Shown: positions 20,516-51,492 of the stretch, in pieces
Position numbering within the stretch: the first letter of the stretch is position 1
How the letters are laid out: each line of letters starts with the position of its first letter
Source: Lepidodermella squamata
Lineage: Eukaryota; Animalia; Gastrotricha
Assembly (NCBI GenBank): GCA_047495785.1
Contig: JBLDXI010000043.1
Coordinates: 62,001 to 126,000 of the forward strand
DNA length: 64,000 nt
Reading direction: 5' to 3'
The notes under the pieces: model-generated
The model's input: the letters and a program-made list of their open reading frames with translations, nothing else
What the model was told of the DNA's origin: nothing
The model's database searches: none
Position numbers and translations under genes: made by a program

Positions 20516-22509
20516 TCAAGTCGCATTATTAATTATTAACGTTTCGTTAATTGCGAGATAATAGGCAATTCTCCTTCGCTTCAGTCTCACTGCCACGATC
20601 TTTGGTGTCCGCTCTTTCAAGTTTCTTAGGTCAGATCGCGCTCCTAGCTTAACAAGGTATTTAACGATGCGATACTTGTTCCTTTCGACAGCATGATGCA
20701 GCGCCGTGTTGCCCTTGTGGTCGGCATCATCGACGTCAGCCAGCTTGAAGCCTTCCAGTTCGCACAGTAGCTTCACGCATTCCAAGTTGCCGGTAACACA
20801 GGCTGCATGCAGGGCGGTGAAATTCAAGTTGGTTTTCTGGTTAATGAGTTGCTTCAGCTTTTGAATCGCGTCTTCAAACGAATGCCCCTCCTGGGCCATC
20901 TCCAGGTGGACTTTCATCAGGATCAACAACCTCACAGCGTCAAAGTTGCTGAACGCAATACTTAGATGAAGACCCATCTCCCCTTTGTCAATTATCAACT
21001 TGTTGGGATTTTCCGGCAGTGTGCCGTGAATCGACGCGTCATAGCGAGCTTCAAGCAGCTGCAGGGCGATTTGATTTCGTAAACAAAGGTGAAGAGGCAT
21101 TAATTCGCCTAAAACGCAGCAGTGAAAGAACAACTGATAAAAATAGAAATTGCAGATCATCAGTGGGAAATTTAAATCAAAGAGCCAACCTTCTCATGCT
21201 CGGTCCTGAATTTTGTATAGCTTTCAATAGCATCCGCATCCATTGCTGTTTCAGCCTGACAGGAAAATATCAAATTTATGGCTAGTCAGAGTGCAATTAG
21301 ATAACTAATGCTAGGCTTCGAGCAAAGTCTACTCACCGCGAACGCTTTATTGATATCAGAAGCTTGGTTGTTGAGTTCGGCCTCGATGTCTCGAAAATAC
21401 TGTTGCATTATATTCAGAGCCTAGTTTTACAAATGTTTGAAGCGCTTACATTTTCTTCCCGGACTTTTTCATCTGAGATTCTTTTCTTGAGATCAGCCTG
21501 AGGTAGGGGGCCATTAAAAAATCGCAGTGAATAGGCAGCGAATTAACGTACTATCTCACGAATATCCATCATCTGACTGTTCAGCATTCCGTTTTCGCCA
21601 ATTACTTCATCAACAGCCTCGCCGTAGAAAAAGTCATCGCCCATCACCGAAACCATGTCGCTCCTCCCAGTTTGATTTCTCACTAACAATCGATTCACAA
21701 TTAATGATCTTAGGGAAGAATCATTGATTGAATCCAATCGTGGTATAGTCAACTTCCTTGGAACCAAAGCGATTCGGATGTCCGACCATGGCGTCTGAAG
21801 AAGGACCAGTTCGTAGGCGAAAATTCCGAATTTCCAGACGTCAGTTTTGTGATGGATCTTTGAATAGGCAGTGATATTCAATTCCTCTGGAGACAGGTAT
21901 GGCAGGGTTCCTACTGCCGAGTTCGAATCGACCCGGTTATTCCTACAACAAAGAAAAGACAGAATGAGGATTCAATAATTCCGTCAACTCACTCATCGAG
22001 CTGCTTTGAAAGACCGAAATCGGCTATTTTAGCATCTCTCGCTCCAGCTGTTAGTAGAATATTCTGGAAAATTCACGGATTTATACCTATTTGAAAAAAC
22101 TGAAAGAAAGCTCACCTCAGTCTTCAAATCTCGATGTGTTATTCCCACATCGTGGAGGTAGACCAGTGCAAGGCCGATTTGAGTTAACCATCGCTTTATC
22201 TCGCTCAAATCGAAATTCGACCGGGCCTTGGCTTTTTCTTGGATTGCCTCGTACATATTGCCACCTTCACAGAATTCCATGGCGATGTAGCGATGCGACC
22301 CATCTGTAAAATATTGGAAATGGTGGCAATAAGGATATAGAATTTATAGTCATCTTACGGTCCCAGGAGTCGAAAAATCTGACAATATTGGGATGACTGA
22401 GCTTGCGAAGAAAGTTAGGCTCATTCAAACACCGTCCTGCATTGCGCGAAACTAGTTTTATAACAACTGCTTTGGTACTCAATTTTGACTTTGAAGCTGC
22501 ACAGTTCAT
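20516..22509 (-). CDS. Kinase-helical linker-ankyrin gene A1 (NEK-like Ser/Thr kinase fold, multi-exon)
   Basis: AVVIKLVS..LNEPNFLRKLSHPNIVRFFDSWD | MEFCEGG..HRDLKTE | NILL..KIADFGLSK | GTLPYLSPE..KTDVWKFGIFAYEL; three short helical exons; terminal exon LFFHCC...TALHAAC...TALHHAV. Short GT-AG introns. Confidence 0.88.
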
Positions 22510-22805
22510 TTCGCCCCGGACAATCATCACCAAATAAGTCGTTGTGTTCCTTTTCTTTGAATAAAACTGGATAAGAAAAACCTAATAATGAAGCGCCAAG
22601 GAAGGAGTTTTAGTTTAGTTTTATTCGAGGTTAGAATTCTATACACGGAGGCGACAATGGCGTTATTCCAGGCTAGTTTGAGGCTAAAACCGAATTTCTC
22701 AACAGAAATCATCCCGCTTTGACCACCATGGTGACGTAGGATGCCACAAGCTTTATTTACTCGCTCCATGACAGCCTCGTCGCAGGAAACAAGTTTGGAT
22801 ACTGC

Positions 22806-25800
22806 TTAACGACGTAGTTGCCTTGGGGCTTGCGCGAGCAAAGTCACTACGTCCTGTCTATTGTTCAGTCGCGCCAAATCTAACGCATTTTGGCCCGAAC
22901 TGTTCGTTTTCTCTTCTTCAACCGCCTTCGTACTCTTGAGCATCTCGACGATCTCGCGATGGCCAGCTTGAGCAGCTAGCATGAAAGCCGTATTCCCCTC
23001 GTCGTCGGGCAAATCAATTGTAACCAACATTTTTCCATCTAATTTCAACAGAACTTCCACGCATTTCAGGTGACCGATAGTACTAGCCAGATGAAGTGCC
23101 GTTCGCCCAGCCGCGTTTTTCTTATCCGCCAAGGCTTTGGCAGCGAAGAAGCCGTCACGTCCCCGGCTGTTCTCGAATATGAATTTTGCATCGAGCAATT
23201 GTTTGACAACTGCGTGATAACCCTGTCGAGAACATACGTGGATGCACGTATCGCCCTCTGACACAGGATTCATCTGCCCCATCAACTGCGAGTTCCATTG
23301 ATAGTCGAGCAGACCTAGGCTTTGTTGTCTTGCATGCGCATACAATAGAGGAATAGCCACGCCATAATAAACATCCAGAAGGCAGGCTCCGAAAAATGAC
23401 TAGGAAATTCGATTTTAGGGGGGAAATTTGGTCTAATGAAGGCGAACCTTGTACGTTGCTCTCATCCAATCGTCCCGCTGTTTTTCCGCGGCCTTGCGTT
23501 TGCTTTGTGCTGTCTGGTGGAAATACGACAGGCAAAATTTATAATCTTGATGGCGATTTAAACGAAATTCTAGAATATTATTTCTACATCTCAGACCTGG
23601 TTAGCTCATCCGTAAAATGTTTGAAAATGCTATAAAATCTAGTTTATTAATGTGACGATTTTTTTCTATTCAGCAATATATTATTTGACCGCTGCAAAGT
23701 AAAAAGTATCTTGGCGCATTTTCTCACATTTCGAACTGTGTATGTCACATCTAAAGTGTACAATCATGTAATGTCGACAACAAAAATGGCCATTTGATGG
23801 GTACACAAAGTAAGCCTAGTCTCAAATGCCATATTGACCCAAAACGTGTAATTCGGGGCGATGAATGCGAATCTGAATTCACTTTTCTGATCAGGCGAAT
23901 CGATCGCCTAAAAGTTGATAAGCAATCGATGTTTATTGTTTATCGAAAATCGATTTGTTTGAACTTAACGTGATTGCTATATTTCTACAGTATCAAATTC
24001 GGATTCCTCACCCCGAATTACACATTCTGGTCAACATGGCACTTGACTAGACTTACTTTTTGTACCCATTAAATGTACATGTGGGTTATTGGCCATGACA
24101 TTCCAATTTCATTGGTTGAAACCGTTCGAAAAAATACCTCAGAATGACGGAGATATCGCGTTAGAAGTTTAGAGACGATTTTTTCACATTTTGAGAAAAT
24201 TTTTAAATTACTTCCTTCTGCGCACGACAAAAACTGTTTGCTCAACGTCGTTATCTCCGGATTTCTTAGCCATATTCCGTTCGAAAGAGCGAGACAAGGC
24301 GCATTTTACCCCATCATTCAATTTGAATAACAACCAAAAGTGGCGACGCGGGATATTTGTTGGCATCCTCATTTAAATTTGAATTCCAGCGCACAATTAT
24401 CGCTGACATTGATACCTGAAACTGCGAAATTCGGTATCTACGATCTACGACTCAAACTCCTTGAGGTAAATAGGTAAAGCCAGAAAGGCCTTGGCTGACC
24501 CCGGGACTCGTTTTTCTGGCTGCTGAAAATAATTAAAAAATGACTAAAGGCTCGGATAAACGGGCACACAGTTTGTCAAACATTTACTTCATACATCGAT
24601 GTTTGATGAAAATGTTTGAAATGCATTTATACGATTAAACCTGTTTGGCAAACATCGGAAAGGGTGAAAGGTCACTTCTGAGAGCTTCAAACATCAGTTT
24701 GTCAAACTTTCATTTACACTCTCAAACAATGTTTGCAAGAAAATTAGCAAAATGTATGCAAATCATCAAGAAATTAGCATAATTTATGCAAATTTATGCA
24801 AATTTATGCACATTTTGTTTAAATTATGCAAATTAGGAGAAAAATGACCTAAACGGCTAGAATGCTTTTACATTTTCGACCGCTCTGATTTGATTTTTTT
24901 CGTTGCCGCGTGACCGTAGCAATTTACGAATCAATGTGATCAGATTCCATCCATTTTTGAAGAAGCGCATGCAAGACTTCCACAGATGCCGTTCCGGCTG
25001 GCACCTTCGCAGCAGCCATAGCGCCAAATGTTTGCATGTTTGTCAAACAAAATCGCCTCCCCGAGTGATTTTGTTTGAAGTCATTTTCAACAAACTTCAC
25101 AAAAATTTTCTTTCAAACCCGTCTATTTAGACGGACAAACATGTTTGAAAGCCTTGTTGGTCTTATCAATGTTTGAACAAAAAGTTTGAACGTGTAAATG
25201 CCATGTTTCATCAAACAATGTTTGAAGTCAATGTTTGACAAACATGTTTGCCCGTTTATCCGAGCCTTAAGATGCACTTTTCACTTTGCAGTGGTCATTT
25301 GTTACAATTTTGTTTTTCAAAATTTGGATGAGCTGCAGAAACACGGTTAATTCGCAGAAAATCTGCAAAACAGCTGTTCCCAACAAACGCTAGACAATGA
25401 ATAGTTCGAACCTACAAGATGTACCTGGGCTCATTCGATACTATTTTTCAGTATTTTTAGTTTAGTATTTCTCGGCCGATTTTTTTTCGAGATTTTAGAA
25501 AGTAATTAAAATTTATCATGGGCGGATAGCGCGCTGGGTGGCATAAATTATGGCCGCTTGTCGCGCTTGTCGCGCAAATTCAGCTCGAATAAATCCACTA
25601 CAGAAAGATTGTTAGCTTCCTATCTCCTACAGTGTTGTCTATTGTTGTGTGGTTAAATGCTTGAAAATGCCTACCTCAACTTTTTCCTTCAAAGCATTGA
25701 TTTCTTCGCTTGAACGCTGATTAAGAGTTTCCAACATTCGCCTTGCTTCTTCAGCTTGAGCAGTCTGGTCAGCTAACTGTGTCCTTAAGGCATCAAGCTG

Positions 25801-28339
25801 CGAAAATGCATTACCAAAATGCATTACTGATTGTCAATTAGTATAGCGAATCTACCTCATCACGTTGCCTTCGCATTCGCTGGTGGATGTAGCTGAAGTT
25901 AGAAGTCATCGCTTGTATTTCTGGGACGTTGAAGTATTCGCATGTCATGATTTCATTCATCGTGCTACGCTCGCTTTGCTTTGTGACCAGAAGCTTGTTA
26001 ACAATCATATCGCGCAACTGCGGGTCACTGATTTGCAACGGTTGCTGATCGACGCGTCCGGATGAAAGCGGATTGAAGCTTCATAAGATAAGAGTATAGT
26101 AAAACTTTTATTGCCGTTGGAAAATGATCTCACTTTTCTTGGTTTAAGATGCCAGTCAACTCATCGGCGACCACATTTATGCGCCAGGGTAGCTCAAGGG
26201 TAGCTATTTCAACAGCGATTATGCCATATGACCAGCAATCGACGCGTGGATCTATTCTTGAGCCAGGTGCCAGGCGGAACCTTTCCGGGGCCATGTAACA
26301 GTACGTGCCAACCAGCCAGTTTTCGGAGGAACGGCACTGCGACCTTTTAAAAAAGAGCATTACATTTCAGTATTTGGCGCATGAAGTTAGGTCAACTAGG
26401 TCTCATGGGAAAAACTTTTTTACCCGACCAATGTTTCTTCCGAGAACCACAAATGTAACTAAAACCTGCCGACGTTCTTTTTCAAAATTTCAAGAAATTA
26501 TAGTATTAAAGAGACTACTCGGATCGCCACAAATCTTTCAACATGAAATTCTTTCGGTTCAGGGGCTAAAAAGGGTGCATAAAAGGGGCATGTCTCTACG
26601 AAAAAATTGATCTCAGGATAATCGAGTAAAGCGATATTTTCATGTCGGATTACCCGGTCCTTTATAGGTCCGTTTAGACTCCCTCGCGCATCATTTTCCA
26701 AGAAATCTATTCCATTAGGTATTAGGTAATTCGTTTCAAATGGATCCTGGGCCAGTCTGCCCTGGCTAATTTGCTCCTGCAGACTTTGAAATGGATTGAT
26801 ATTTTGTTACTTTTGTATGCGGTATGGCATCTTTTGCTGTTGAGCTCTCAACTTTGGGACACATGCTCGTAATAAATAAATGAATAAATAAAAAGAAATT
26901 ATTTCGAAATGGCGCCCAGGCACTACATACGATCCTAGGTTACCAGCTATCAACAGAAATAACAGTCGTATTTCACGTCGCATGCTGAGGAGTGAGACTG
27001 ATATCGGAAGAACAGTGATCATCGGCTGGCGAATCAGCAGAGTGAAAGCCGGTCTCTTCGGAAAATCGGGCAGAAGCTCCCGCCGCCCCTCCTCGGGATG
27101 TTGCTATTTTCCAAGTCAGCTTTTTCAAACAAAAATCTCGCTTTCAATTCCTAATTGGATCGTACTAATAATGCTCAAAACTACGGCAACGCTTCGCTAG
27201 GTTTTCAGAAACGCTAATTTTTCAAACCTAATTTTAAGTAATAATAGTTTTATTTTTCCTCTTCAGGACTGAGCGCCGTGTACCGTTTCCGGTTTTGAAG
27301 AGAGCGAAGGCATGCGAAGAATTATCATCACCTCCCCCCTCCCCATAGAATTCATAATTTTCAATCGAGTTGACAAGCATGTGCCATTCCTCTTTTTCGA
27401 AAGAAACCGATTCCGCTAGTTGGACGTCGAGAATAATTTTGATCTCGAAATCCTTTTCGCCGGGATTTTTTCTATTTTCTCGTTTCTTAGTGGTTTTCTT
27501 TTTCCGGCGAATTTCCTTAGTAAGACCTACTTTAATTATGCTTCTTTGCATTCCGTTGATGCATCTGGTTCGAGGTCTACCTCTGGGTGCAAACCACCCA
27601 AGCGGAGGTTGGACTATTGAAAATTAAATTAAAATAAATCTTCCTATAATTTATTTAGTGGGGCCCGTAAATCGATGATAAATGCAGATAAATGCAGAGG
27701 GGTTGCGATTATTGGGGAGCCCTGTAGGTATCGCTAGTAATTTGAATAGGCTTACGTTTCTCTCAGCTGGGCAAGGCCGAAATCCGCGACTTTCAAGCTG
27801 CGTTTGTCGGTTGTGATGAGAATGTTTTCGGGCTTCAAATCCGAATGAGTGATGCCCATGTCGTGGATGTAGGCGATAGCGTAGCCCATCTCAGCTAGCC
27901 AACGCTTTCGCAAGTTCGGTTCGAGTTGCTCGTGGTTGTTCGCAATGCGTCTGTTAAGCTCACTCCTCAAATCGCCTCCGCCACAATACTCGAGGTCCAT
28001 GATCCAGAAGTCACCATCTATAAAAGATTGAATAAATAGCTCTAACAATTGTGCCCAGTTCTCACCTTGAAAAGCATTGTAAATCCTGACGATATTAGGA
28101 TGGCTTAACATACGGAGCGACTGTGATTCCCGCAGCAAAGATTTCTCCAGGGCGGTGAATTCCACCCATGTAAGTCGCAGCCTCTTGATAGCAACCGGAT
28201 GCTTCGCCTCAGCCCGGAAAACTCCATCATTCTGACCGCCACCTATGAATTTCCCCACGAATTCATACTCAATTACATTCCCTGCCTGTCTGTTGGTAAT
28301 TGGCGAAGGCAATGGCACATTCCGTTGATCTTGCTCCAT
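22806..28339 (-). CDS. Kinase-coiled coil-ankyrin gene B1 (non-RD kinase, multi-exon, TE-expanded introns)
   Basis: IGGGQNDGVF..VAIKRL..RESQSL..HPNIV | LEYCGGG..HSDLKPENIL..VADFGLA | GTYCYMAPE..DCWSYG | ..LDALRTQLADQTAQAEEARR.. | ankyrin exon (GDTCIHVC, RTALHLASTIGH, TAFMLAAQAGH). Confidence 0.88.
23792..24075. mobile_element. Palindromic MITE-like insertion in a B1 intron
   Basis: ~85-bp imperfect inverted repeats: ATGGGTACACAAAGTAAGCCTAGT...GTGTAATTCGGGG (23798-23858) vs CCCCGAATTACAC...ACTAGACTTACTTTTTGTACCCAT (24011-24069); absent from the paralogous B2 intron. Confidence 0.7.
24548..25267. mobile_element. Non-autonomous PIF/Harbinger-type (Tourist-like) MITE, 720 bp
   Basis: TIR AGGCTCGGATAAACGGGCA / TGCCCGTTTATCCGAGCCT; TAA target-site duplication (24545-47, 25268-70); many subterminal TGTTTG/CAAACA repeats. 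Confidence 0.85.
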
Positions 28340-28535
28340 CTCAAGCAAAAAGTTAATAAAGGCTAGATATCACCAAAAACCAGACTATTCGGCATTCCCT
28401 AGAAAAAATGCATCTTATCAGTTGAGGAAACGCTTTTATGTAAAATTATGAATGACGAAATTATTACCATTAATCTTCAATCTCAAAATATTCAATACCA
28501 CAGCTTATTAGCATACTTAAAAAGAATACCAGTCC

Positions 28536-28571
28536 CATAGAGAATAGAGTTAGGTAACTCTATTCTCTATG
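28536..28571. repeat. Short perfect hairpin CATAGAGAATAGAGTT...AACTCTATTCTCTATG
   Basis: Perfect inverted repeat of at least 16 bp with a tiny loop; a related CATAGAGAA...TTCTCTATG palindrome lies at 42666-42702. Confidence 0.8.
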
Positions 28572-28938
28572 ACCAGTCCATTGTGAGCGTCGCCGTAAAA
28601 GACTAAGCTGCCATTTTCCAGCGAAGTAATCCGGAAATAGCCACCCTCGAATAATTGCATCTTTTTTGGGACCATTATCGGAGTTTCGGAAAAAATAGTA
28701 GCCATGGCTATTAGTTGAGGAAATACGGTGAGGACGATTTCTTAAAGAACACTGGATGAAAAGTTGAAAAAATGAGATTAAAATAGCATTCACAATCAGG
28801 CTTGGAAGAAAGCAGTGAAATAAGCAATGACTAAGCGCCGTGAACACGTTATTCTCCTTATTACTAAATTAATAATATTTAATTTTACGCGTTCACATCA
28901 AGCATAAAAAAATAAAAGGCATCTGAGTAGTGTACCTA

Positions 28939-28964
28939 TAGTAGTAGTAGTAGTAGTAGTAGTA
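28939..28964. repeat. (TAG)n microsatellite
   Basis: About 8 TAG units. Confidence 0.85.
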
Positions 28965-30047: not shown

Positions 30048-33000
30048 AACGTATGGTCCATTTATAATTGCCGGATAAAAAGTGGTCGCGTGCGGCACTC
30101 TTTTCTAATTCAGCTCTAATAATTTCACTAAAATTGAAAAATTGTTAGTTCCGTATATGTTACCGCGTTGTCTATGCATATTATTATAGATAAAAGATAG
30201 GAAGAGTGAGCATTTTTCTTAAGCATTTTTCTTAGCTGTCGATACGAGATTTAAAAGCAACACACTTGTTGACAAATCAGTCAGCAAAAAAATCCACTCC
30301 ATCGCTACGCTATCCCGTTCATTTTTTGCTGCCTTGTTTAGCAACATCTTCACTCGATTTTTACGCTATCTTGTTGAGATCGTGCACTCGTGCACTTTTT
30401 GCAGCCCGTATTAACATGATCACTCCATTCATGGATACTATTAAAAATCATAATCTATGCACTTGAAGCCATGATTCATTTGGCGATTTTTTGCAAAATG
30501 TTCGAATTTTTCTACCGGCCGAAAATTTGAATTGCATGGATGCTGGATCTTCGTGCCCTATTCTTCCACGTCGAAATTAAAAGGACAAATCTTGTTGCGG
30601 TACGTGCGCGATTTTTAAATTAAATTATGAAATTGATGGGATTTTTTATTTCAATTTTTCATGCTATTTTCATACATCAAACAGTGGCTCAGGGTGGTGG
30701 GCATGCCGAAAAAAATAGATTGTCGAAAAACCGTCAATAAACTGGCGAAAATATTGAAAAATGTGAATAAGTTGTAGAAAAATAGTACAATGGTTGATAA
30801 ATAATTTTTTAATTTATCTTAACCCGAATTAGTCATCGAATAGTAAAAAAACTGTTAAAAAAGCAGAAAATTAATTCCATAATAATATAATGTAAACATT
30901 ATTAAAAAGGGGACGTCTCATAATCACTCGAGCATAATAGTTAAACTTCCTACTGGGCGCTGTTTCTAAACGTAGCTGCAACGAATCAGGCTTGCGCCGT
31001 GTTAGCGCGCGCGCACACTATAACTAATAAGCCATCCCGCGTGCGCGCTTATTCTGAGAAGACCAGGATGAAGGCGCATCCTCCACCCCCTCCCAGGCGC
31101 CGTTATGTCCTAACCCACCCATGGACGGGGTCATGCCGAGACCATAACTCGAAGAAACCCATGGTCTCACCATAACTTTTATGGCCAAGTCTTCCGCTCG
31201 CCTTTCAAATTCCTTCGATCTGATCGCGCCCGTCAGACAATCTTGGATTTCATAGCTATACCAATAACATATCAATATATCAATAACACAAATGCTGGCA
31301 TTTCAGTTTATTGATAGAAAATCAGTCAAAGGTGTCAGTCATTGGGACTAGACGTGCTAAGTGTCAGTTGAAGACGTTCAGCGAACTTCGGCTGGAATTT
31401 CGGCATTGATTATCGTGGTCATCCCATTACAGTCTCTCCTCCGTTTTCATCGCTCGAGGGCGTCGAGTAGAAACAAGCAGAGCTTATAACGAAGCAATTA
31501 CGGTCCCCAATTTTGATGGCGCGTTTCCTATTTTCGAGCTAATTCGCGGCCGGTTTCCGATTGCATTCATTCAGAAGAGTTGTTAATTCTAAACGCATTT
31601 TCAAATGTATCGCTCCTTGAGAGAATGTCGGCTGATATCCAGTTTGCCTTACTCACGGCCAAGTCATACGGTGTCTCTCCTTTCAAATTCCTTAGGTCAG
31701 ACCGCGCCCCGCGCTTAACCAGGTACTCGACGATGCGATGGCTGCTCCATGCGGCAGCATGATGCAGCGCCGTATCGCCCTCGTGGTCGGCTTCATCGAT
31801 GTCAGCCAGCCTAAAGCCTTCCAGTTCGCATAACAGCTTCACGCATTCTAAGCTATTGGCAGTGCAAGCTGCTTGCAAAGCAGTGAAATCGAACTTGGTT
31901 TTTCTGTTTACACAGCTTCGCAGCCGCTGCATCGCCTCTTCAAATGAATGTCCGCCCTGAGTCATCTCGAGGTGGACTTTCAGCAAGATCAGCAACCTCA
32001 CAGCATCGAAGTTGTTGAATGCAATACTTAGATGAAGAGGGGTCTGTCCTTCATCAATTATCAAGTTGTTAGGATTTTCCGGCAGTGTGTCGTGAATCGA
32101 CGCGTCATAGCCAGCTGCGATTAGCTGCAGGGCGATTGGACTTTGTAGACAGAGGTTGAGCGAGATTATTTCACCAGAAGCGCAGCAATGAAAGAACAAC
32201 TGATGGGGAGTGTGATGTGTGATCAAGTAAAAAGTAGAATTCAAGAGCAAACTTTCTCGTGCTCGGTCTTGAATTTCGTATAGGTTTCGATAGCATCCGA
32301 CTCCATCGCTGCTTCATCCTGATAAACAAATGAAGAAAATTGAATACTCATTTGATTCATATTGAATTGATGAAATACTCACCAAAACCTCTTTATTTAA
32401 ATCAGCAGCTTGGCTGTTAAATTCAGCCTCGATAGCATTTTCGTCCAGCGAATACTGTTGCGTTATATTGAGAGCTTGTATTTACACATTTTTGAAGCGC
32501 TTACCTTTTCTTGCAAGTTTTTTTCATCTGAGATTCTCTTCTTAAGATCAGCCTGAAAAGAGGTTAACGAGTATATAATGAAAAATCTTTTTGATTAACG
32601 AATGCACATACTATCTTTCTAATGTCCAACATCTGGTTGTTAAGCATGCCATTTCTGCCAATAACTTCATCAACAGCCTCGCCGGAGAAAAAGTCATCGC
32701 CTATCACCGAAACCATGTCGCTTCTCACAGCTTGGTCTCTCACCAATAATCGATTCACAATTAACGATCTCAGGGGCGGATTATTGATTGAATCCAATCG
32801 TGGTATAGTCAAATTTCTTGGAACCAAAGCAATTCGAATATCCGCCCATGGCGTCTGAAGAAGCACCAGTTCGTAAGCAACGATTCCGAATTTCCAGACG
32901 TCAGTTTTGTGATGACTTTTTGAATAGGCAGTGATATTCAATTCCTCTGGGGACAGGTATGGCAGGGTTCCTACTGCCGAGTTAGAATCGACCCGGCCCA

Positions 33001-37129: not shown

Positions 37130-37176
37130 TATTTTTGCGCGCCAAATCGCTGATTGGCCCGCCTAACGTATAAGAA
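37130..37176 (+). promoter_or_regulatory. Putative promoter of the transposon ORF2: E2F-like site, CCAAT box, TATA-like box
   Basis: GCGCGCCAAA (37137-46), ATTGG (37153-57) and TATAAGAA (37169-76), 70-110 nt upstream of ATG 37248; motif match only. Confidence 0.45.
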
Positions 37177-37247
37177 GGAGTATGTTGGTAAGTTTAAATC
37201 ATTCTTGCTCTCAGCTCGAATTTATTTCTCTGACATTGCTGATCATA

Positions 37248-41073: not shown

Positions 41074-43601
41074 TCAACGACGTAGCTGCCTTGGGGCTTG
41101 CGCGAGCAGAGTCACTACGTCAGTTCTGTTATTCATTCGCGCCAAATCTAACGCAGTTTGGTCCGAATTGTTCTTTTTCTCGACTTCAACCGCGCCCGTA
41201 TTCTTGAGCAGCTCGACGATCTCGCGATGGCCAGCTTGCGCTGCTAGCATGAAAGCCGTATTCCCCTCGTTGTCGGGCAAATCGATTGTAACCAACCACT
41301 TTCCATCTAGTTTCAACAGAGCGTTCACGCATTTCAGGTGACCGTTAGTACTGGCTTCGTGTAGCGCTGTTCTTCCCGCCGCGTTTTTCCTATCCGCCAA
41401 GGCTTTGACAGAGAAAAAGCCGTCACGTTCCCGGCTGTTCTCAAATCTGAATTTTGCATCGAGCAATTTCTTGACAACAGCGTGATAACCTTGTCGACAA
41501 CACGCGTGGATGCACGTATCGCCCTCTGACACACGATTCATCTGGCCCATCAACTGCGAGTTCCATTGATAGTCGAGCAGACCTAGGCTTTGCTGTCTTG
41601 CATGCGTATACCATAGAGTAATAGCCACGCCAGAATCAACACCCAGAAGGCAGGCTTCGAAAAATGACTAGGAAATTCGATTTTAGGGGGAAAATTTGGT
41701 CTAAGAATGTAGTCGAACCTTGTACGTTGCTCTCATCCATTCGTCTCGCTGTTTTTCAGCAGCCTTGCGTTTACTTTTTGCTGTCTATTGGAAATACGAC
41801 ATAAGACGCGGGCGGAATTTTTCTAATCCTAATTTACGATATCATCTCTGACCTTTAAATGGTCATAGATCACGTTATACAAAAACATAGCTCTCCTAAT
41901 TTTGCAGCGTTGCGATTTTGAAAATTTTGAAATGCTTACCTCAACCTTTTCTTTCAAGGCATTGATTTCTTCGCTTGAACGCAGATTAAGAGCTTCCAAC
42001 TTCCGCCTTGCTTCTTCAGCTCGAGCAGTTTGGTCTGCCAACTGTGTCCTTAAGGCATCAAGCTGAAAAAACCCCAAAATGCATTATTGAGTTTCAATTA
42101 TAGTATAGCGAATCTACCTCATCACGTTGTCTTCGCATTCGCTGGTGGATGTAGCTGAAGTTAGAAGTCATCGCTTGTATTTCTGGGACATTGAAGTATT
42201 CGCATGCCATAATTTCATTCATCGTGCTACGCTCGCTTTGCTTTGTGACCAGAAGCTTGTTAACAATCATATCGCGCAACTGCGGGTCACTGATTTGCAA
42301 CGGTTGCTGATCGACGCGTCCGGATGAAAGCGGATTGAAGCTTCATAAGATAAGAGTATAGTAAAACTTTTATTGCCGTTGGAAAATGATCTCACTTTTC
42401 TTGGTTTAAGATGCCAGTCAACTCATCGGCGACCACATTTATGCGCCAGGGTAGCTCAAGGGTAGCTATTTCAACAGCGATTATGCCATATGACCAGCAA
42501 TCGACGCGTGGATCTATTCTTGAGCCAGGTGCCAGGCGGAACCTTTCCGGGGCCATGTAACAGTACGTGCCAACCAGCCAGTTTTCGGAGGAACGGCACT
42601 GCGAGCTTATGAAAAATACCATGTCTCATTTATTTTTCCCTCAGATGAAATCATTAAGTTTCGAACATAGAGAACGAACATAGAGAACCATCGTTCTCTA
42701 TGGTTTCGAATATCTAGGTGAGGCTGGTGTTGAGGTGATTCTGTCTACTGTATCGTCAATGGGTCAGCTTTTTTGACATATATTTGACATATATTTTGGA
42801 TCCATGCATGATCTATTGAGTTCTAGATCCTAGATCCACTATTATTTCCGTGTTTTGGACTTTAGAAAGTACCGCTATTCACCGTAACAATGTTAGCCGT
42901 GATCGCCGAAAAATTTTAGGATTCGAAATTGGAATTGAAAAATCCGGTCATTCCCGGTTATTCCGATTATTCCCCCAAAAAAGGTATCAGTTAGTTTTTG
43001 GCTTACGCTTCTCTCAGCTTGGCAAGGCCGAAATCGGCAACTTTCAAGCTGCGTTTGTCGGTTGTGATGAGAATGTTCTCAGGCTTCAAATCGGAATGAG
43101 TGATACCCATGTCGTGGATGTAGGCCATAGCGTAGCCCAGTTCAGCTTGCCAACGCTTTCGTAACGTCGGTTCGAGCTGTTCGTGGTCATTCTCAATGCG
43201 TCTGTTAAGTTCACTCCTCAACTCGCCTCCGCCACAATACTCGAGGTCCATGATCCAGAAGTCGGCATCTATGAAATATTGAATATTGAAGCTTCGAAGT
43301 TTTAAACATACTGTGCCATGTCCTCACCTTGAAAAGCATTGTAAATCCTGACGATATTAGGATGGCTTAACATACGGAGCGACTGTGATTCCCGCAGCAA
43401 AGATTTCTCCAGGGCGGTGAATTCTGCACAGGTAAGTCGCAGCCTCTTGATAGCAACCGGATGCTTCGCCTCAGCCCGGAAAACTCCATCATTCTGACCG
43501 CCACCTATGAATTTCCCCACGAATTCATACTCAATTACATTCCCTGCCTGTCTGTTGGTAATTGGCGAAGGCAAGGGCACATTCTGTTGATCTTGCTCCA
43601 T
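41074..43601 (-). CDS. Kinase-coiled coil-ankyrin gene B2 (duplicate of B1, compact introns)
   Basis: Same exon series as B1 (MEQDQQNVPL..., HSDLKPEN, GTYCYMAPE, coiled-coil exon, ankyrin exon ending AQAPRQLRR). Confidence 0.88.
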
Positions 43602-44479
43602 CTCAGACGAAAAACTGACTGAAAAGCAAACATCACTTTAACCTTTTGTATGCCAGATTATTAGGCATTTCCTAGAAAAAATGATCTTATCATTTGATGC
43701 AACGATAACAAAATGCCGCAATTATTACTGTTAGTATAAAATCTGTATTAATACCACCAACCACAGCTTATCAGTTCTTGAGCATTGTGGACGTCGCCAG
43801 AAAATAATTGGCCAGCCCATACAGAGTTACTCGCAATGAATGATAAAATATCATTTCCTTGGTAAGTTATCTGGAACTTGACCTTATTTCACCTGAAGTG
43901 ATCCAAGATGATCGTGATAATGATCCCAGGAGAAACTTGGATAATATAATAGAAGCTTATTCCATGCATTACTGTGTTGTTGGAAAAATGAGAAATTTAA
44001 GAGGTGGTCACGAACAGGCGTAGAAGAAAGCAGTGAAAAAAGCAATGATTCAGCGTCGTGAAAACGTTTTTCCCGTTATTTTATTAACACTATTGCATTA
44101 CGTGGTCACAAACACACTTTTTTATTAGTAACAGAGGAGATTTTTGGTGGAAACAAAAAAACTAGGCACAAGCGGGAACCCTTGTCGGTTCGGGTCCAAA
44201 ATTTCAGATTTCAGACACGTGGACAACTCTGCCCTGGGCTCTATGCTTTACCACTGCGGGTGATGTTAAAATACGATATCACAAGCCAGGGTTGATAGTA
44301 GAAAGTAAAACAATTAACGAAAAATTCCATTTTTCTTGAGAACAATTCAAGCAGAACTCGACGCTGCTAAGCCACGGAAAGCAAGCGGATTGTTGAAAAA
44401 TGTGTTTGCGCTATGAGCAATGAAGTGACTGTTTGTGCACACCCATTTGCAAACATATTTCAGTATTTATTCACTTAGA

Positions 44480-46539
44480 TTAACTGACGCGGTTTACAAT
44501 ATCGGGTTCATTTTTGGCACCCCTTTGTATCAACAAATCGATCATTTTTGGGATTTTTCCTCTAATAGCCAAAGCCAACGGCGTCAAACCAGCGTTATTT
44601 TTGCCATTCACTTTAGCGCCCTTCAAAACGAGATACTTCGCGATTTCGTATCTGTCAGTGTTGATGGCGTTATTGAGTGCCGTATCGCCCTCATCGTCCC
44701 GCGCATCGAGATCGACGCCTTCGAAGTCACAGAGAAGTTTCACGCATTCGAAACTGCCATTAGAACAGGCGGCTTGAAGGGGAGTATTGCCACTGAAATT
44801 GCCTTTGTTTAAAAGCAGCCTCAACGACGCGTCATCAATTTCGAAGGTTAATTTCATCATCAAAAGTAGTAGCTCGAGCATTCGGTGTTGCTTGAAGGCA
44901 CAGCACACTCTGAAACATGTTGCTCCATCGCTGTCCGAGACTTCGACCAGCGAATATGGCAACGGCCCGTGTACCTCCATTCGATGGACAACGCTCAGCA
45001 ATTTCAGAGCAACATTAGGCTGTAAGCATGCTATTGCAGATAATTCGTCGCCAAGGGCACAGGAAAATAGGAAGGTCTAAATATAAGGAAGTTTTATCTT
45101 TCCTGTCCCCATAACATTGCGATTCACGCCTCACCCTCTCCATTTCAATTCTAGCTACATTTTGTTCAGATTCGAGATTCGTCAACAGCAGATGCTCACT
45201 CTGCGTTGGATTGAAAGGAAAGGTAAGAGAAAAGCCGAATTTATGGCAATGAACTTCTCACTTCAAGTTCCTTCGGAAGATTTTCCACCTCCAAGTCGTG
45301 AAGCTGCTCAGCTTCCATGTGTTGCCTCTGAATCTGAATATTACACAGGAGCCTTTAAAATTGAACGATTTTAACACAGATGTGCCAATTAAACAAAGGC
45401 ACTAAAGAACTAAGATTTACACTTATTCATGGAAAATCACCTCTTCCAGGTGTTGTATCTCTTCTCGCAGTTCGTTTCTCAAACCAGCCTGATTTAACGC
45501 GAACAGTTACAGAAACTAATTTAGGGAAATGAGGCCACTCACCAAAGCCCTGATATCATCCATCTGTTGTCTCAGATAGGGACTGTCATTCAAAACTTCC
45601 TCGAGGATGGATCCAGCGAAATAATTATCGCTCATCGCTGATACCATATCTGACCTGTCTTTTTGCAATCTAACCACAAGCTTGTCGACAATGAGCCGGC
45701 GCAACTGCTCATCCTCAATCTCATTGATGCGCGGAATCGTAAGTTGCTTGCTGTATAAATGCGAACGTATTTTATGTTCAAGTGTTCCGTAAACTGATCC
45801 TTGATCCACCGCCAGCCATGGAATTTCTAAAATAACCAGTTCGTAAGCAATAATGCCAAATTTCCAAACATCAGTTTTAGGATCGTCCAATTTCCCTCTA
45901 ACGACGCCGTGCTCTTCTGGTGAAAAATAACGCGGAGTACCAACTAGGGATTTCGAAGAAGCCACGCTATTTCTAGAAACCTAATTGCTTTGAGAGATTT
46001 TGGAGAATGTTCATCAACGAACCCGCCAGTTTGTTTGGAGAAGCCGAAATCCGCAAGTTTGGCATCGCGATTGTTGTTTTTCAGCAGAATGTTCTACATT
46101 GCCAAGTTGAAAAAACAAAAATAAACACGATTGGGCAAACGAATTACATCAGGCTTCAAATCGCGATGGACGATTTCCAAATCGTGGAGGTAAGCCAGCG
46201 CGAGACCGATCTGCGTGAGCCATCGTTTGATCTGGTCATAACTGAAGGCCGTGCCTTGAAATTTATGGCTCATTATAGCCCGGAACAAATCTCTGCCTTC
46301 GCAAAACTCGAGTGCAATGTATCGATAATTCGGACCTATTAAGCAAACAAAGAGATATTTTTTGCTCCTGCTGGCCTGATATCGAACTACTTACAGTCCC
46401 AGGAGTCGATGAAGGCGACTATGTTCGGGTGGCTCAGCATTCGAAGCAGATTCGGCTCGTTGAGTATTCGCTGCGATGAGTTGTTGGTCGCTCGAAGTGA
46501 CACTCGTTTTATTACGACCTCCTGCGTAAGGCTATCCAT
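44480..46539 (-). CDS. Kinase-ankyrin gene C1 (A-related kinase, distinct ankyrin module)
   Basis: EVVIKRVS..LNEPNLLRMLSHPNIVAFIDSWD | HRDLKPD | ADFGFSK | GTPRYFSPE..KTDVWKFGIIAYEL; short linker exons; ankyrin exon (GNTPLQAAC, GDTALNNAI, GLTPLALAIRG). Start codon uncertain. Confidence 0.82.
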
Positions 46540-47474
46540 GTCCAAGATTACTACCAAAGCCGGCTATCTCAAACAATCGATCCTTGATAACTTGTTTAGG
46601 TGCATGCTTGAGAAGCCTAAGGCCATCAAGTTTACAACTGCTCATGCATTATCCCGTGAATGAGCACGAAACATTGTCTTACTTGATATCGTTGTTATTA
46701 GATAAGAAAAAATGAATGAATGAATGCTACATAAAAACTACAACCATAAGGCGAGAGTAAACACAGCTCGAAAAATTGAAGCTCGGCGTTACCACTTTCT
46801 CCGATTTGCTCTCATTTTTGGTTCACAAAAACAATAAGCCATAGCACACTTTTTGGAAACCTGAAAAGCAATGGTCGGATATTTTTGTTTCAATTTTTGA
46901 GAAGGCCTATTTTAGAGATTTGAGCAATAAATACCTATTTCAATGTGTAAAATTGTTTGAAAGTCGCAGTAAATTTGACATGCCGCAGAACGGGGACCAG
47001 GTACCAGAGCTGAAAAACCTGCAGGATTTCCTAATAACCCATCATTTCTAAACCAAGGTTTCTTAGTTTGAATAATGCCAATTGGAACTTGGAATTAGGA
47101 CTAATAGAGACTCTATTAGTCACAAGTTACAGGCCGCGATACTCGATACTCATGGAGAGGCGATATGGGAGCCTGGAATTAGCCGAAAAAAAATTGCATC
47201 GCTATATATTTGCCATATTTTTTATCCCATTGAAGGTATATTTACACAAGGCGAGATTTTTCTCAAGATGATGTGACAAATAAATGAAATATTTCAATAG
47301 CAGGAAATGAAAAACCAAGCCTTGATCGATTCTTTAAGATTCAATCCATATCTAATTCAACCACAAAAAACACAGATAATTTTAAAATATAATGTATACT
47401 CACTGTGTCGCAAAGCAACATAATTATTACTGAATTAGGCAGTCCACATTTTTAATAAATGTTTATCTCTCCAG

Positions 47475-48417
47475 ACATTTCCGGGCCGGAAGTAACCCGG
47501 AAGTAAGTTTGAGAAGTAACCCGGTTATTTCGGTTTAACCGGCGGTTAACCGCGGGTTCCGCTATGTTTAAGATGGAATCGATCATTCATCATAATTAAT
47601 AACCGATAATCGATAATCGATACTCGATAATCCGTTGCTCAGACAAAGAAACAAACGGTCCCAGCGTCTTCAGCATGAAATTCTACCCCGGACTACAAAT
47701 TTTTAGCATTGTTGGACAATTAGAACTCGAGATATCGTAAAATCAGTGTTACTTCCGATCCCAATTAAGCTAGCGGAAAACTTTCTTTGTACTTAATTTT
47801 TCAAAGAAGAACGGCAAAACCGCTTCCTTTCATGTCGAAATCCCCCTTAGAAATCCGCGAGGGGTGAATTTGGTACGAGGACTCGGAATCTTTTTTCAGA
47901 ATTTTTATAGCTATCATGGTTATCGAGATAATTAGGGGTCATAAATTAATTTATTGCTTTATTGCCGGGATGCTCTGAATTTTATTTTTGTCTCAAATAC
48001 CTTTTGTGATACATCGTCTAGACCAGAATTTCACGAGGAATCGAATGGCAGTTCTGCTCTGGCGATCATTGGTAAAAAGGAATTAACGTTTAAATTGATG
48101 CAAAAATCCAATTTTTCAAAAAAATATTCTTACCTTTTTCTGCCCACATGGTCACCTCTGTTAACTAAATCTTAGCTTAATACTTAATAGTGACAGCATT
48201 GAATAATGTAGCTGTAACACATATAGTGAAACCTTGGAATATCTACGATGAAAAACACAAATTACTACTGGTCCAGCTATGTATAGCCAAAACGCGAACC
48301 GGCGGTTAACCGGCGGTTTTTGAGGCTGGAAAAAAGTGGAACGGGGCGGTTTCGGTTCGAAAAAACCGGGTTCAACCCGGTTAGAACCGGCGGTTTTTTG
48401 GAACCGGAACATCTCTA
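47475..48417. mobile_element. Probable non-autonomous DNA transposon remnant (hAT-like end)
   Basis: Right end GGAACCGGAACATCTCTA (TAGAGATG-type terminus) with clustered AACCGGCGGTT/AACCCGG repeats at both ends; left TIR and TSD not resolved. Confidence 0.45.
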
Positions 48418-48554
48418 TTTCCGGCAATCAAAACGTGTAAAATAGGAATTCGTATATTTTCTTTTATTCTATTTTATAATATATTTATAATATTATAATA
48501 TTTAATATAATATTTATTTTATAATATTTAATATAATATTTATTTTATAATATG

Positions 48555-49124
48555 CAAGCCAGAATCAACACCCAGTAGGCAGGCCTCGAAGAATGACTGA
48601 ACATGTTTAGGGTTAAAATCTACCTCTTGACGCTGTCTTCGCATTTGCTGGTGTACGTAGTTGAAATTAGCAGTCATCGCCTGTATTTCAAGGACATTGA
48701 AGTATTCACACTTCATTATGTCGTTCATCCTGCTTCGCTGGTATTGATTTTTAACCACAACCTTGTTAACAATCATATCACGCAAATGATCGTCATCGAT
48801 CTGCAACGGCTGCTGGCCGACACGTCCGGACGAGAGTGGATTGAAGCTTTATAAGATAAGTGTAGAACACAAACTCTATTTTCATTAACAATAAAAAATG
48901 TTACTTCTCTCGGTTGATGATCTCGGTTGAAATCAGCGATTACTAGATTTATAGGCCATGGCTGCTCCAGAGTTGCCATTTCAATGGCGATTATGCCTAA
49001 TGGCCAGCAATCGACGCGTGGGTCAATTCTCGAGCCCACTCTATCAGGTGCATCGGCGAACTGCTCCGGAGCCATGTAATAATCGGTTCCCAACAGCCAG
49101 TTATCAGAAGAACGGCACTGTGAT
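48555..49124 (-). pseudogene. Truncated B-type kinase-ankyrin remnant (B3)
   Basis: C-lobe exons (GTDYYMAPE..RVDCWPLG; MQIDDDHLRDMIVNK) are present. The N-lobe and coiled-coil exons are missing, and the ankyrin exon breaks off after SFFEACLLGVDSG at an AT-rich tandem tract (48450-48552). Confidence 0.8.
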
Positions 49125-49424
49125 CTTAATAAAAAATTCTGTTTCAACGTCAACGTTCAACTTCTTTGACTTGGATCACTTCGTAAAATGCGAAAAAACC
49201 CAAAGTTCACATTATATTTTTCTTATATTTCCTAACCCTGACTCTGACTAAACCTGACTATTTAGATACTTGGCCCGAGTCCGTTTAGACGTCTTTCACT
49301 GCAATCTAAACTAAAGCCAAGCGTCAGGAATTAAATATCAATGATCTCAGCTTGTTGGACCTTTCGGAATTCGACTTCGATCAAACTATCCGATAGGTTT
49401 TGAATTGCTATAATTGATCATTTA

Positions 49425-50328
49425 GCCTATCTACTGGCAGTACATTGAAGAAGTTCAATTATTTATTTGATCATATATTTGGGAAGTGTTATCACGTCTG
49501 ACGGCAGGTGTAAGGTGTAAGGCTGGTGTATAAGGACTCGTTAAGAAAAACGCAACATTGGCGCTATGCGGAAATATATTTTTGGCAATCGATCTGTCCC
49601 GACTAAAGAAAAAGTGAAATGCTTAAAGGGGGTTGTGGATGCGACTGAATCATGAATGGCAGCGAAAGTTTGACGTTAACTTCTGAGGATGCTAGGCGGC
49701 TCGGCGTAGGTTATATGCGTCATTTGCGTAAAATATGCGGCGTAACACTTAGGGACAGAGTTCGCAATGGGGTCATTAGAAATATGTGGGGTTAAGAACA
49801 ATTTACATTTAAACTTGCTAGGCAGCAACTTTGCTGGTTAGGGTACGTCGCTCGCATCGACCCCGGAAGACTGGCAAGCCAGATGCGGTACTGGCAACCG
49901 CCAGATAATACTTGGATGATACCTCGAGGGCGACCAAAATTAAGGTGGATTGATTGCATCAAAAAACATCTGAACGAAGTAGGGATTACAAATTTTGAGG
50001 GGGCCGACGCCCTGGCCCAGGATAGAACTACTTGGAGACAAAAATTCATAGTTATTTTGGTGAAATTGGATTAAGGATGAAGGGTGAGTTTATTAAGGTT
50101 GACGATCAGGATAGGTAGCTTGCTACCGGTCCTCCTCCGACGCTCGGTTCGCTTGGCGTGTACAGAATTTACATCACACCCAGCGAATTGAATACACCGG
50201 AGTGCATTTTTTTCCTTCTTATTTTTTCTTTGTCTCTGTACTTTTACTCAATTGTTATTGTTATGTTATTGTTGATCAATTAATGAAGGAAAAAAGATGG
50301 AATGCAGAAAATGCTATGCTATGCTATG
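49425..50328 (+). mobile_element. 5'-truncated, decayed RTE-type non-LTR retrotransposon
   Basis: YLGSVITSDGRC, LRKICGVTLRDRVRN, LCWLGYVAR, PRGRPKLRWIDCI, AQDRTTWR (RTE ORF C-terminus) with stops and frameshifts; (ATGCT)3 possible tail at 50311-50328. Confidence 0.8.
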
Positions 50329-50399
50329 ATCATCTAGGCAGAATTCAGAAATAAGGACTCGTTAAGAATTAAATATAAAAAATTCATAACACAAATTAC

Positions 50400-51492
50400 C
50401 TCCTCTAGCGAATGTAGCGTTTCATTTAGTTCGTTCCTCAGATGATTCTGATAGTTTATAAAAATTGAAGAAAACGATATTGAGCAGAAGTATTTCTTAT
50501 CAAATTTCTAATTTCACGCATCTGTTCTGCGAGATAGGAGCTTTCATCCAACGCGTCATCCACAACAGGGCCCGTGTAGTAGGTATCACTCATGACTGAT
50601 ATCATGTCAGACCTATCCTTCTGCAGACTGACCACAAGTTTCCCGACAATCAACCTGCGCAACTGCTCGTCTTCGATCTCGTCAATGCGCGGAATAGTTA
50701 GTTGCTCGCTGTAGAGGTGCGAACGTATGCGGTGCTCAGGCGTCCCAGAGTTATCCCCAACCGCCAGCCATGGAATTTCTAGAATAAGCAGTTCGTAAGC
50801 AATAATGCCGAACTTCCAGACGTCTGTCCTGGGATCGTCTAGTTTCCCTCTAACGATGCCATGCTCTTCAGGCGAGAAATAGCGCGGGGTCCCAACAAGG
50901 GTATTAGAAGGAACCCCGTTGGTTCTGGAAAAGGAATCCCTTGAATGAATTTCGTTAATGGTCATCAACAAACCCTGTAGTAGGTCTTGAAAAGCCGAAA
51001 TCGGCAATTTTAGTATCGCGACTGTTGTTTTTCAGCGAAATGTTCTAAGTACATTTGGCAAGAAATTAGAACAAAAATAGGATTGGGCAATCAAGTTATT
51101 ACATCCGGCTTCAAATCGCGATGGACGATTTCCAAATCGTGAAGGTAAGCCAGCGCGAGGCCGATCTGCGTGAGCCATCGTTTGATCTGGTCATAACTGA
51201 AACGCGTGCCTTCGATCTTCTGGTCAAATATAGCTCGTAGCAAATCTCCGTCTTCGCATAACTCGAGCGCAATGTATCGATAATTTGGACCTGGCATGAA
51301 GTAAAATTATAGATTCCTGCCGAGCTGAGTCGAGCTACACTTACAGTCCCAAGAGTCGATGAAAGCGACAATGTTCGGGTGGCTCAGCATTCGAAGCAGA
51401 TTTGGCTCGTTGAGTATTCGCTTCGATGAGTTATCAGTCGCTTGGAGTGACACTCTTTTTATTACCACTTTCTGCGTAAAGCGATCTTTCAT
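50400..51492 (-). pseudogene. Kinase gene C2 (paralog of C1) with no downstream ankyrin exon of its own
   Basis: KVVIKRVS..LNEPN..DSWD | ALELCEDG..HRDLKPD | ADFGFSR..GTPRYFSPE..RTDVWKFG | NHLRNELNETLHSLEE, followed by the LINE. It may be a truncated but expressed gene. Confidence 0.7.

Follow-up and report, generated by a model that had tools for sequence, protein, structure and literature searches.

Results

A cluster of alternating kinase-ankyrin genes

The window analysed here is a stretch of 64,000 nucleotides from the gastrotrich Lepidodermella squamata (contig JBLDXI010000043.1, positions 62,001 to 126,000), to which all coordinates refer unless a contig is named. It contains seven kinase-bearing units, each on the minus strand, and the plus-strand order A1-B1-A2-B2-C1-B3-C2 given in the initial annotation was confirmed. 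Of these units, only A1, B1, B2 and C1 are intact genes. The features are as follows.

20516..22527, minus strand: A1, intact A-type gene, 8 exons, 544 aa (GT-AG model with stop-free translation; Pfam Pkinase and Ank)
22806..28339, minus strand: B1, intact B-type gene, 7 exons, 583 aa (AG/GT boundaries, exon lengths matching B2, clean translation, Pfam)
31567..32996, minus strand: 3' part of A2, the remainder of exon 4 and exons 5-8 including the ankyrin exon (mapped from A1)
32997..39970, plus strand: DNA transposon, 6,974 bp, within A2 exon 4 (ends, repeats, target duplication, Pfam)
39971..40561, minus strand: 5' part of A2, comprising exons 1-3 and 7 nt of exon 4 up to the insertion (conserved ATG at 40543)
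41074..43601, minus strand: B2, an intact gene of the B type with 7 exons, encoding 583 aa (GT-AG model built by hand; translates cleanly)
44480..46539, minus strand: C1, a gene of the C type with 8 exons, encoding 538 aa from ATG 46539 (intron positions as in A)
47325..48420, no strand: dispersed repeats filling the gap after the B3 fragment (many genomic copies, 86-96% identity)
48555..49123, minus strand: B3, B-type relic (exons 3 and 4 plus 14 codons of the ankyrin exon)
49429..50328, no strand: ~900-bp dispersed repeat where C2 3' and B3 5' exons would be expected (dozens of copies, ~87%)
50501..51489, minus strand: C2, reduced to kinase exons 1-4 of the C type (a trace at 50400-50447 may be exon 5)
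20586..28862, minus strand: duplication block 1, B1-A1 (blastn self-comparison, colinear with block 2)
31652..44080, minus strand: duplication block 2, B2-A2 (blastn self-comparison, colinear with block 1)
25856..26343 (partner 42118-42605), minus strand: B1/B2 gene-conversion tract (per-exon and per-intron identity and dS)

Exons were mapped between copies by local alignment and extrapolation, and were entered into searches singly; joined translations were used only for frame checks, alignments, dS and trees. In A1, a kinase domain without a canonical Gly-rich loop precedes coiled-coil exons and an ankyrin exon (20516-21133). B1 is laid out as kinase, coiled coil and ankyrin exon (22806-23399), and two of its introns, 2 and 5, have expanded to 1.4 and 2.2 kb. 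This ankyrin exon and its equivalent at 41074-41667 are the last exons of the B genes and do not belong to A. From the B stop codon to the next A start the distance is 279 bp (B1 to A1) or 531 bp (B2 to A2), in agreement with the earlier estimate.

The remaining three units are broken, by the transposon and by dispersed repeats. A2 is interrupted by the transposon 7 nt into exon 4; its 3' exons are 78-89% identical to their A1 counterparts and the frame is otherwise open. The element has perfect 12-bp terminal inverted repeats (CCCAGGAGAATT), a 2-bp target duplication (GG) and an ORF (33894-35315) with weak similarity to Transposase_21. Three further full-length copies, ~100% identical, are present in the genome, and the element is very young. 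B3 is a fragment without N-lobe, catalytic exon, coiled coil or ankyrin repeats, in which exon 7 (the ankyrin exon) is reduced to its first 14 codons; the dispersed repeats next to it measure 147 bp (47325-47471) and ~910 bp (47508-48420). C2 lacks the coiled-coil and ankyrin exons and has lost its exon 4 donor. A low-stringency tblastn search for the lost B3 and C2 exons recovered only the 14 B3 codons and a doubtful C2 exon 5.

The A/C and B types are full-length paralogues

The two kinase types, A/C and B, are subtypes that are not unrelated: they align end to end, through kinase, coiled coil and ~5 ankyrin repeats. A/C genes have 8 exons, and A agrees with C in all seven intron positions and in the TDVWKFG motif. 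B genes have 7 exons, and their structure had been called different; one B intron is indeed not shared, but the other five of six match A/C in both position and phase. Against the Pkinase profile (PF00069, cut-off 31.7), the B1 exon ORF scored 98.6 bits and exon pieces of A1 and B1 scored 35-38 bits, while the last exons of B1 and A1 matched Ank_2 with E=1.8e-21 and 5.7e-24, respectively (ankyrin profiles PF12796 / PF00023).

The beta3 Lys, alphaC Glu, HxD Asp, catalytic-loop Asn and DFG Asp are kept in A1, A2, C1, C2, B1 and B2. HSD replaces HRD in the B type, A/C retaining HRD, and two B copies located elsewhere in the genome (on contigs C36 and C42, see below) have NFG where the others have DFG. 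A canonical GxGxxG loop is absent from both types. The B loop, GGGQNDG, is atypical (GxGxxxG); the A loop is at best RGEMNC, a peptide downstream of which A2 begins, and C1 and C2 have no in-frame Gly-rich loop. That all four A/C copies combine catalytic residues with the lack of a conserved Gly-rich loop is mildly unusual, alone among the protein features. Two candidate upstream exons that might have supplied the loop were rejected: the ORF at 22530-22769 ahead of A1 is not conserved in A2, and a Gly-loop-like peptide upstream of C1 lies in a different frame, with no GT-AG intron linking the two frames. For neither type can a role as active kinase or as regulator be read from the sequence.

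The closest solved structures to B were those of PERK, Aurora C, PLK4, CDK2 and Chk1 (E about 1e-13), and those to the A C-lobe were BIKE and AAK1 (1e-6), followed by NEK7 and NEK2 at 1e-4; this search pointed to no specific kinase family for A or B. When the kinase ORF of B1 was run exhaustively with phmmer against 1.84 billion representatives, nothing fell below 1e-30; the best matches were multi-kinase proteins, 30-40% identical and lacking ankyrin repeats. A word-based search with the B1 ankyrin exon, covering proteins of 108-345 aa, gave no match at E<=1e-10.

Two-gene blocks and silent divergence

In a blastn self-comparison the two B-A blocks are 78-95% identical through exons, introns and the region upstream of B, and the block of B followed by A was copied as one piece. 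Block 2 is the longer because of the transposon. Within the blocks, B1 and B2 have 100% identity in exon 3 and intron 3 and 98% in exon 4, against 79-91% in the adjacent exons and introns, which delimits the conversion tract.

Silent divergence was 0.40 (dS) and 0.32 (four-fold Jukes-Cantor, JC, distance) for A1-A2, and 0.27 and 0.19 for the unconverted exons of B1-B2 (Fisher test between the two pairs, p=0.065). The corresponding values were 0.75 and 0.55 for C1-C2, and 0.80-0.87 and 0.82 for B3 against B1/B2. The last two comparisons thus fall in the same range, 0.55-0.87 (Fisher test, C1-C2 against B3-B1, p=0.25), which is consistent with an earlier copying of C followed by B. The case for this earlier co-duplication comes from similar silent divergence over few sites (40 four-fold sites in B3). 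Non-coding DNA that could have proved it is gone, either deleted or supplanted by repeats. Across A1-A2, B1-B2 and C1-C2, dN/dS was 0.18-0.37, indicating that the copies were constrained during most of their history.

The initial annotation had proposed that the pair is the unit of duplication, even across the older A/C split. A two-gene segment as the unit of copying is supported by the colinear B-A blocks, and the matching C-B divergence would fit a second such event, but the extension to the A/C split is not supported. Four-fold sites are saturated between A and C (p=0.75-0.77), as compared with p=0.50 for B3 versus B1/B2 (Fisher test, p=0.009). Trees returned ((A1,A2),(C1,C2)) at 99-100% support and placed the B copies in a shallow clade, in which the protein tree left B3, (B1,B2) and (B36,B42), the latter being the copies on C36 and C42, as an unresolved trichotomy. 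Partner trees and ages are therefore congruent for the young events (A1/A2 with B1/B2; C1/C2 with B3/B) and fail to agree at the A/C node: since the A/C split is saturated and the B copies coalesce recently, the pair was not copied across it. A single B gene probably sat between C and A, although gene conversion among B copies, as seen in B1/B2, could make B3 look too young and so mask an old B split.

Copies elsewhere in the genome

The A/C-type C-lobe exon occurs four times in the genome, always within this cluster. The B type has two further intact copies, C36:678303-673745 and C42:343336-339535, which brings the two subtypes together to nine. Homology of these copies to the B locus stops at the B upstream region and at the B stop codon, their neighbours are unrelated (ANF_receptor-like ORFs), and no A/C-type exon lies within 17-20 kb of either, contrary to the expectation that A/C and B would be adjacent elsewhere. 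They have dN/dS of 0.34-0.52 and differ from B1/B2 by a dS of 0.38-0.50. The C57 kinases were rejected as an outgroup, being intronless, equidistant from A/C and B, and having no detectable ankyrin exon.

Discussion

The results presented above probably reflect a small, decaying tandem cluster of one lineage-specific family, in which the alternation arose as a side effect of two overlapping segmental duplications, each taking in two adjacent genes. Passive co-duplication, which the initial annotation had itself named as the alternative to a partner pair, fits the data best. The proteins of the family consist of a Ser/Thr-type kinase domain, a coiled-coil linker and ~5 ankyrin repeats, with A/C and B as old subtypes. 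The order of events that we infer would begin with an ancestral trio, C-B-A in the direction of transcription. Copying of C-B would have given C2-B3-C1-B, after which a lone B may have been copied to another contig and later duplicated within a larger segment, yielding the C36 and C42 copies. Copying of B-A would then have produced B2-A2-B1-A1. Later, patches of B1/B2 and A1/A2 were homogenised by gene conversion, and C2, B3 and A2 were broken by transposon insertion and deletion.

Once the types alternate, unequal recombination between like copies would add or remove only two-gene units, so that the alternation would maintain itself without any selection for the pair. Under random ordering of four plus three items, strict alternation has a chance of 1/35; because about two duplication events underlie it, this figure is not statistically compelling evidence of selection.

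An unlikely alternative is that B-type and A/C-type kinases act together, for instance as a coiled-coil heterodimer, and that their adjacency has been selected, the pair thereby being duplicated and retained together. Such a partnership would account for the presence of a B-type gene or relic next to each A/C-type gene in the genome, for the short B-to-A spacers, in which ~80 bp just ahead of the A start are conserved, for the coiled-coil exons and purifying selection in both types, and for a Gly-rich loop being found in B with no conserved one in A/C. Indeed, the spacers, the conserved ~80 bp and the coiled coils are compatible with co-regulation or dimerisation. Against it, the B genes on C36 and C42 are intact, constrained and solitary, and the B copies are all far younger than the A/C split. 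Furthermore, B was co-copied once with its upstream neighbour, C, and once with its downstream neighbour, A; and with A2, B3 and C2 broken (three of the seven units decayed), B1-A1 is the sole intact B-to-A pair. The idea of a required partner pair is thus not upheld, and we infer no functional need for adjacency. In its strictest form the idea is less likely again: B, a complete non-RD kinase, and the Gly-loop-less A/C would depend on each other as a coiled-coil heterodimer, the spacing reflecting co-transcription or shared regulation. If this were true, selection would be acting on the two-gene unit as a module for lineage-specific signalling or sensing.

It is very doubtful that B and the following A form one transcription unit, either an operon-like polycistron or a read-through tandem-kinase protein, even though the B1 stop and the A1 ATG, on the same strand and head to tail, are so close. 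The B and A kinase domains do not lie in one ORF; B1 and B2 both keep the stop after ...APRQLRR, and the B-type genes on C36 and C42 are stand-alone ORFs. The stretch before the A start is not conserved as coding sequence, A2 having indels, ATA for ATG and a TGA, and the spacers carry an AATAAA (B1-A1) and a 232-bp insertion (B2-A2). In addition, no publication describing spliced-leader trans-splicing in gastrotrichs turned up in a literature search.

Finally, collapsed or duplicated haplotypes or whole-genome-amplification chimeras are a highly improbable source of the pattern: the published L. squamata assembly, if it is the same one, was made from multiple-displacement-amplified DNA, a method that yields chimeric reads, but the copies differ by 5-25% in sequence, lie head to tail and are unlike in intron sizes and transposon content, whereas amplification chimeras are near-identical inverted joins and not diverged tandem paralogues. 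Artefact or polymorphism could affect single details only, for example the frameshift in C1 or whether every haplotype carries the A2 transposon.

The preferred reading, a decaying tandem cluster, places the locus among familiar systems. Tandemly arrayed families evolve by birth-and-death, unequal crossing-over and gene conversion, and the multi-gene segmental duplications, conversion patches, pseudogenes and transposon insertions seen here are of this kind. Nothing distinguishes the cluster from such families, the alternation being the product of a two-gene repeat unit. The notion of a pair draws on plant paired immune receptor genes such as RGA4/RGA5 and RRS1/RPS4, which are head to head, share a promoter, interact physically and are paired across species. 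The cluster likewise has two related neighbouring genes that might form a pair, but they are head to tail, and the B type is solitary elsewhere. Vertebrate ANKK1/RIPK4 also have a kinase followed by C-terminal ankyrin repeats, the same domain order as in the cluster genes; no sequence-level relationship to them was detected, the best structural-database matches being generic Ser/Thr kinases.

In Giardia, Nek kinase-ankyrin proteins form a large, lineage-specific expansion that turns over fast and in which many members are catalytically degenerate (Manning et al, 2011; PMC3218828). These share with the cluster an N-terminal kinase followed by ankyrin repeats, and some have coiled coils (PMC3218828). 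In contrast to them, the cluster comes from an animal and not a protist, has introns and a short, fixed array of ~5 repeats, gave no specific sign of NEK affinity for its kinases in the solved-structure search, and represents two subtypes with only nine copies.

These results caution that a striking alternating gene order can come from just two segmental duplications of neighbouring paralogues; since recombination perpetuates the alternation once formed, it is not by itself evidence of a functional pair. As a case of birth-and-death evolution in a gastrotrich genome, the locus is clean and datable, displaying two-gene duplications, an escaped single copy, conversion tracts and one copy knocked out by a very young transposon, and it adds a subfamily with kinase, coiled coil and short ankyrin array to the kinase-ankyrin repertoire of this genome.

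Seven alternating kinase genes on one strand

A motif scan and tblastn located seven kinase-bearing units in the window, all on the minus strand. The initial annotation had described an alternation of A/C and B genes, and this order is real, whether followed from the plus strand or in the direction of transcription (high to low coordinates: C2, B3, C1, B2, A2, B1, A1). Gene models were built by eye on GT-AG junctions and checked by translation in scripts; introns in the window are GT-AG and about 50 nt long.

Kinase-bearing units, in transcription order
51489..50501, minus: C2, exons 1-4, perhaps 5; truncated
49123..48555, minus: B3, exons 3, 4 and start of 7; fragment
46539..44480, minus: C1, 8 exons with A boundaries, 538 aa, intact from ATG 46539
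43601..41074, minus: B2, 7 exons, 583 aa, intact
40561..31567, minus: A2, exons as in A1, exon 4 interrupted by a transposon
28339..22806, minus: B1, 7 exons with B2 boundaries, 583 aa, intact; two introns enlarged
22527..20516, minus: A1, 8 exons, 544 aa, intact

Ankyrin exons 22806-23399 and 41074-41667 are part of B and not of A, since they splice in frame to the B coiled-coil exons and terminate in a conserved stop. A 29-nt intron (21421-21449, and the matching A2 site), unusually short for an animal, is required for open A1 and A2 frames between two coiled-coil exons. The enlarged intron 5 of B1 contains a palindromic 285-bp stretch (23791-24075) and a ~110-bp inverted-repeat pair (24544-24655 with 25169-25271), which are probably small non-autonomous transposons. 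Three tandem small genes at 5780-10154 (minus strand; ORFs 5780-6343, 8135-8881 and 9540-10154) are apparently ankyrin-only. They match the A/C ankyrin exon at about 30% identity, and no kinase exon was detected alongside. Other ORFs of the window (12148-13086, minus; 15090-16097, plus; 61361-62452, plus) are unrelated neighbours, with SOCS box, MAM and C2 domains.

A/C and B as subtypes of one family

A/C and B proteins share a layout of kinase, coiled-coil linker and about five ankyrin repeats (domains from Pfam) and align from end to end. Five of the six B introns are common to A/C.

Introns shared by A/C and B
1: after HPNIV..NAFQ / DSWD, phase 1
2: eight residues after DFG, phase 2
3: kinase-domain end, phase 0
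4: within the coiled coil, phase 0
5: before the ankyrin exon, phase 0

The different exon structure previously ascribed to B comes down to one extra intron in B and two in A/C, one of the latter after HRDLKxE. The end-to-end alignment and five shared introns indicate that A/C and B are two old subtypes within a single family, and exclude unrelated kinase types.

Every window copy with the relevant exons, six in all, retains the Lys, the Glu, the catalytic Asp and Asn, and the DFG motif. In B, HRD is replaced by HSD and the loop reads GGGQNDG; a conserved glycine-rich loop is absent from every A/C copy. For A1, MIVRGEMNC is a possible start; in A2, ATA and a TGA occupy the corresponding site, so the start must be MNC, and C1 starts ten residues ahead of the VVIK lysine. 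These residues mark out neither type as the active kinase or the regulator of the proposed pair. Directly upstream of the C1 ATG (46540-46655, minus strand), another frame encodes a kinase-N-terminus-like peptide with a glycine-rich loop (...FEIAGFGSNLG...). A GT-AG intron joining this frame to that of C1 was sought and none was found; the peptide reflects either an ancestral N-terminus that was frameshifted or a one-base assembly error. Solved-structure searches matched generic Ser/Thr kinases only, and 1.84 billion representatives, searched exhaustively, gave no match above 40% identity.

Solitary B genes elsewhere in the genome

The genome assembly (121.2 Mb, 151 contigs), in which the window is C43:62001-126000, was searched exon by exon, joined spliced proteins being confined to scripts. 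All four genomic copies of the A/C-type C-lobe exon lie inside the window. Two further complete B genes were found on other contigs.

C36:678303-673745: solitary B copy, complete
C42:343336-339535: solitary B copy, complete

Each has seven exons and an open frame, with DFG changed to NFG (Asp to Asn); the C36 copy has one additional ankyrin repeat. No A/C-type exon occurs within 17-20 kb of either, contrary to the expectation that A/C and B homologues stay adjacent elsewhere. DNA homology to the window starts in the B upstream region and stops at the B stop codon. The two loci are mutual segmental duplicates, and their neighbours are unrelated ORFs, some belonging to a repeated ANF_receptor-like family of 2-2.7 kb genes. 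dN/dS is 0.34-0.48 against B1/B2 and 0.52 between the two copies.

At least nine other contigs carry more distant relatives, kinase or ankyrin, with exons of similar size. Contig C57 (30483-43940, minus strand) has three tandem kinase genes with an intronless kinase domain, 38-51% identical to exons of both A/C and B and lacking a detected ankyrin exon.

Duplication history of the array

In a self-comparison, 20586-28862 was colinear with 31652-44080 at 78-95% identity, the match taking in the A 3' end and introns, the B last exon and introns, and some 500 bp of B upstream sequence. Since this colinearity runs through coding and non-coding DNA, B followed by A was copied as one block, which bears out the earlier proposal of a two-gene duplication unit. 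Identity within the blocks is a mosaic: B1 and B2 agree at 100% in exon 3 and intron 3 and 98% in exons 1 and 4, against 89-91% in the remaining exons and 79% in intron 1, while A1 and A2 agree at 93-99% from intron 1 to exon 3 and 62-87% in other parts. The high-identity patches are gene-conversion tracts; outside them, the B copies show a dS of 0.24-0.41 and the A copies 0.32-0.60. Four-fold sites differ at 21/126 in B and 43/167 in A (Fisher p=0.065), a result compatible with one B-A event.

Silent divergence among copies
B1/B2 vs C36/C42 copies: dS 0.38-0.50; four-fold p about 0.28
C1 vs C2: dS 0.75; four-fold p 0.39
B3 vs B1/B2: dS 0.80-0.87; four-fold p 0.50 (only 40 four-fold sites)
A vs C: dS saturated; four-fold p 0.75-0.77

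C1-C2 and B3-B do not differ in silent divergence (p=0.25). A-C four-fold divergence equals the random expectation and differs from B3-B (p=0.009). Protein trees gave ((A1,A2),(C1,C2)) with long stems (A-C about 1.1 changes per site) and a shallow B clade (B3-B1 about 0.35). Given the saturated A-C distance and the shallow B clade, every B split is younger than the A/C split, and the suggestion that the pair had duplicated across that older split is not upheld. Gene conversion could blur copy ages. In the simplest history, a single B would have lain between C and A, with duplication of C-B followed by duplication of B-A; the gene copied along with B would then have been C in one event and A in the other.

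Broken copies and repeats

The A2 frame is open except where a 6,974-bp transposon (32997-39970) follows the first 7 nt of exon 4. Perfect 12-bp inverted repeats (CCCAGGAGAATT) form the ends of this element, which has a 2-bp target duplication (GG) and three ORFs, one weakly Transposase_21/DUF1258-like. Four full-length copies exist in the genome at ~100% identity, one in the window's own contig (C43), one in contig C24 and two in contig C1 (distinct from gene unit C1). The element looks currently or very recently active and, given these near-identical copies, the break in A2 is very recent.

C2 retains kinase exons 1-4, perhaps 5, and B3 only exons 3 and 4 plus 14 ankyrin-exon codons; a single deletion across the C2 3' end and the B3 5' end would account for both truncations. 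The space between them and the stretch after B3 are occupied by three dispersed repeat families, with dozens of genomic copies at 86-96% identity.

49429-50328: dispersed repeat family, about 900 bp
47508-48420: dispersed repeat family, about 910 bp
47325-47471: dispersed repeat family, 147 bp

Meaning of the alternation

The initial annotation had read the alternation as that of a functional partner pair, with passive co-duplication as its alternative. A selected module of B and A/C may be kept as a residual case: the B-to-A spacers are short, at 279 and 531 bp, and about 80 bases ahead of the A start are conserved; coiled coils are present in A/C and B alike, and the A/C kinases are without a glycine-rich loop. 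Nevertheless, passive co-duplication within a birth-and-death cluster is better supported by the evidence than a functional pair under selection. Like copies recombining unequally change an alternating array only in two-gene steps, and the order is thereby perpetuated.
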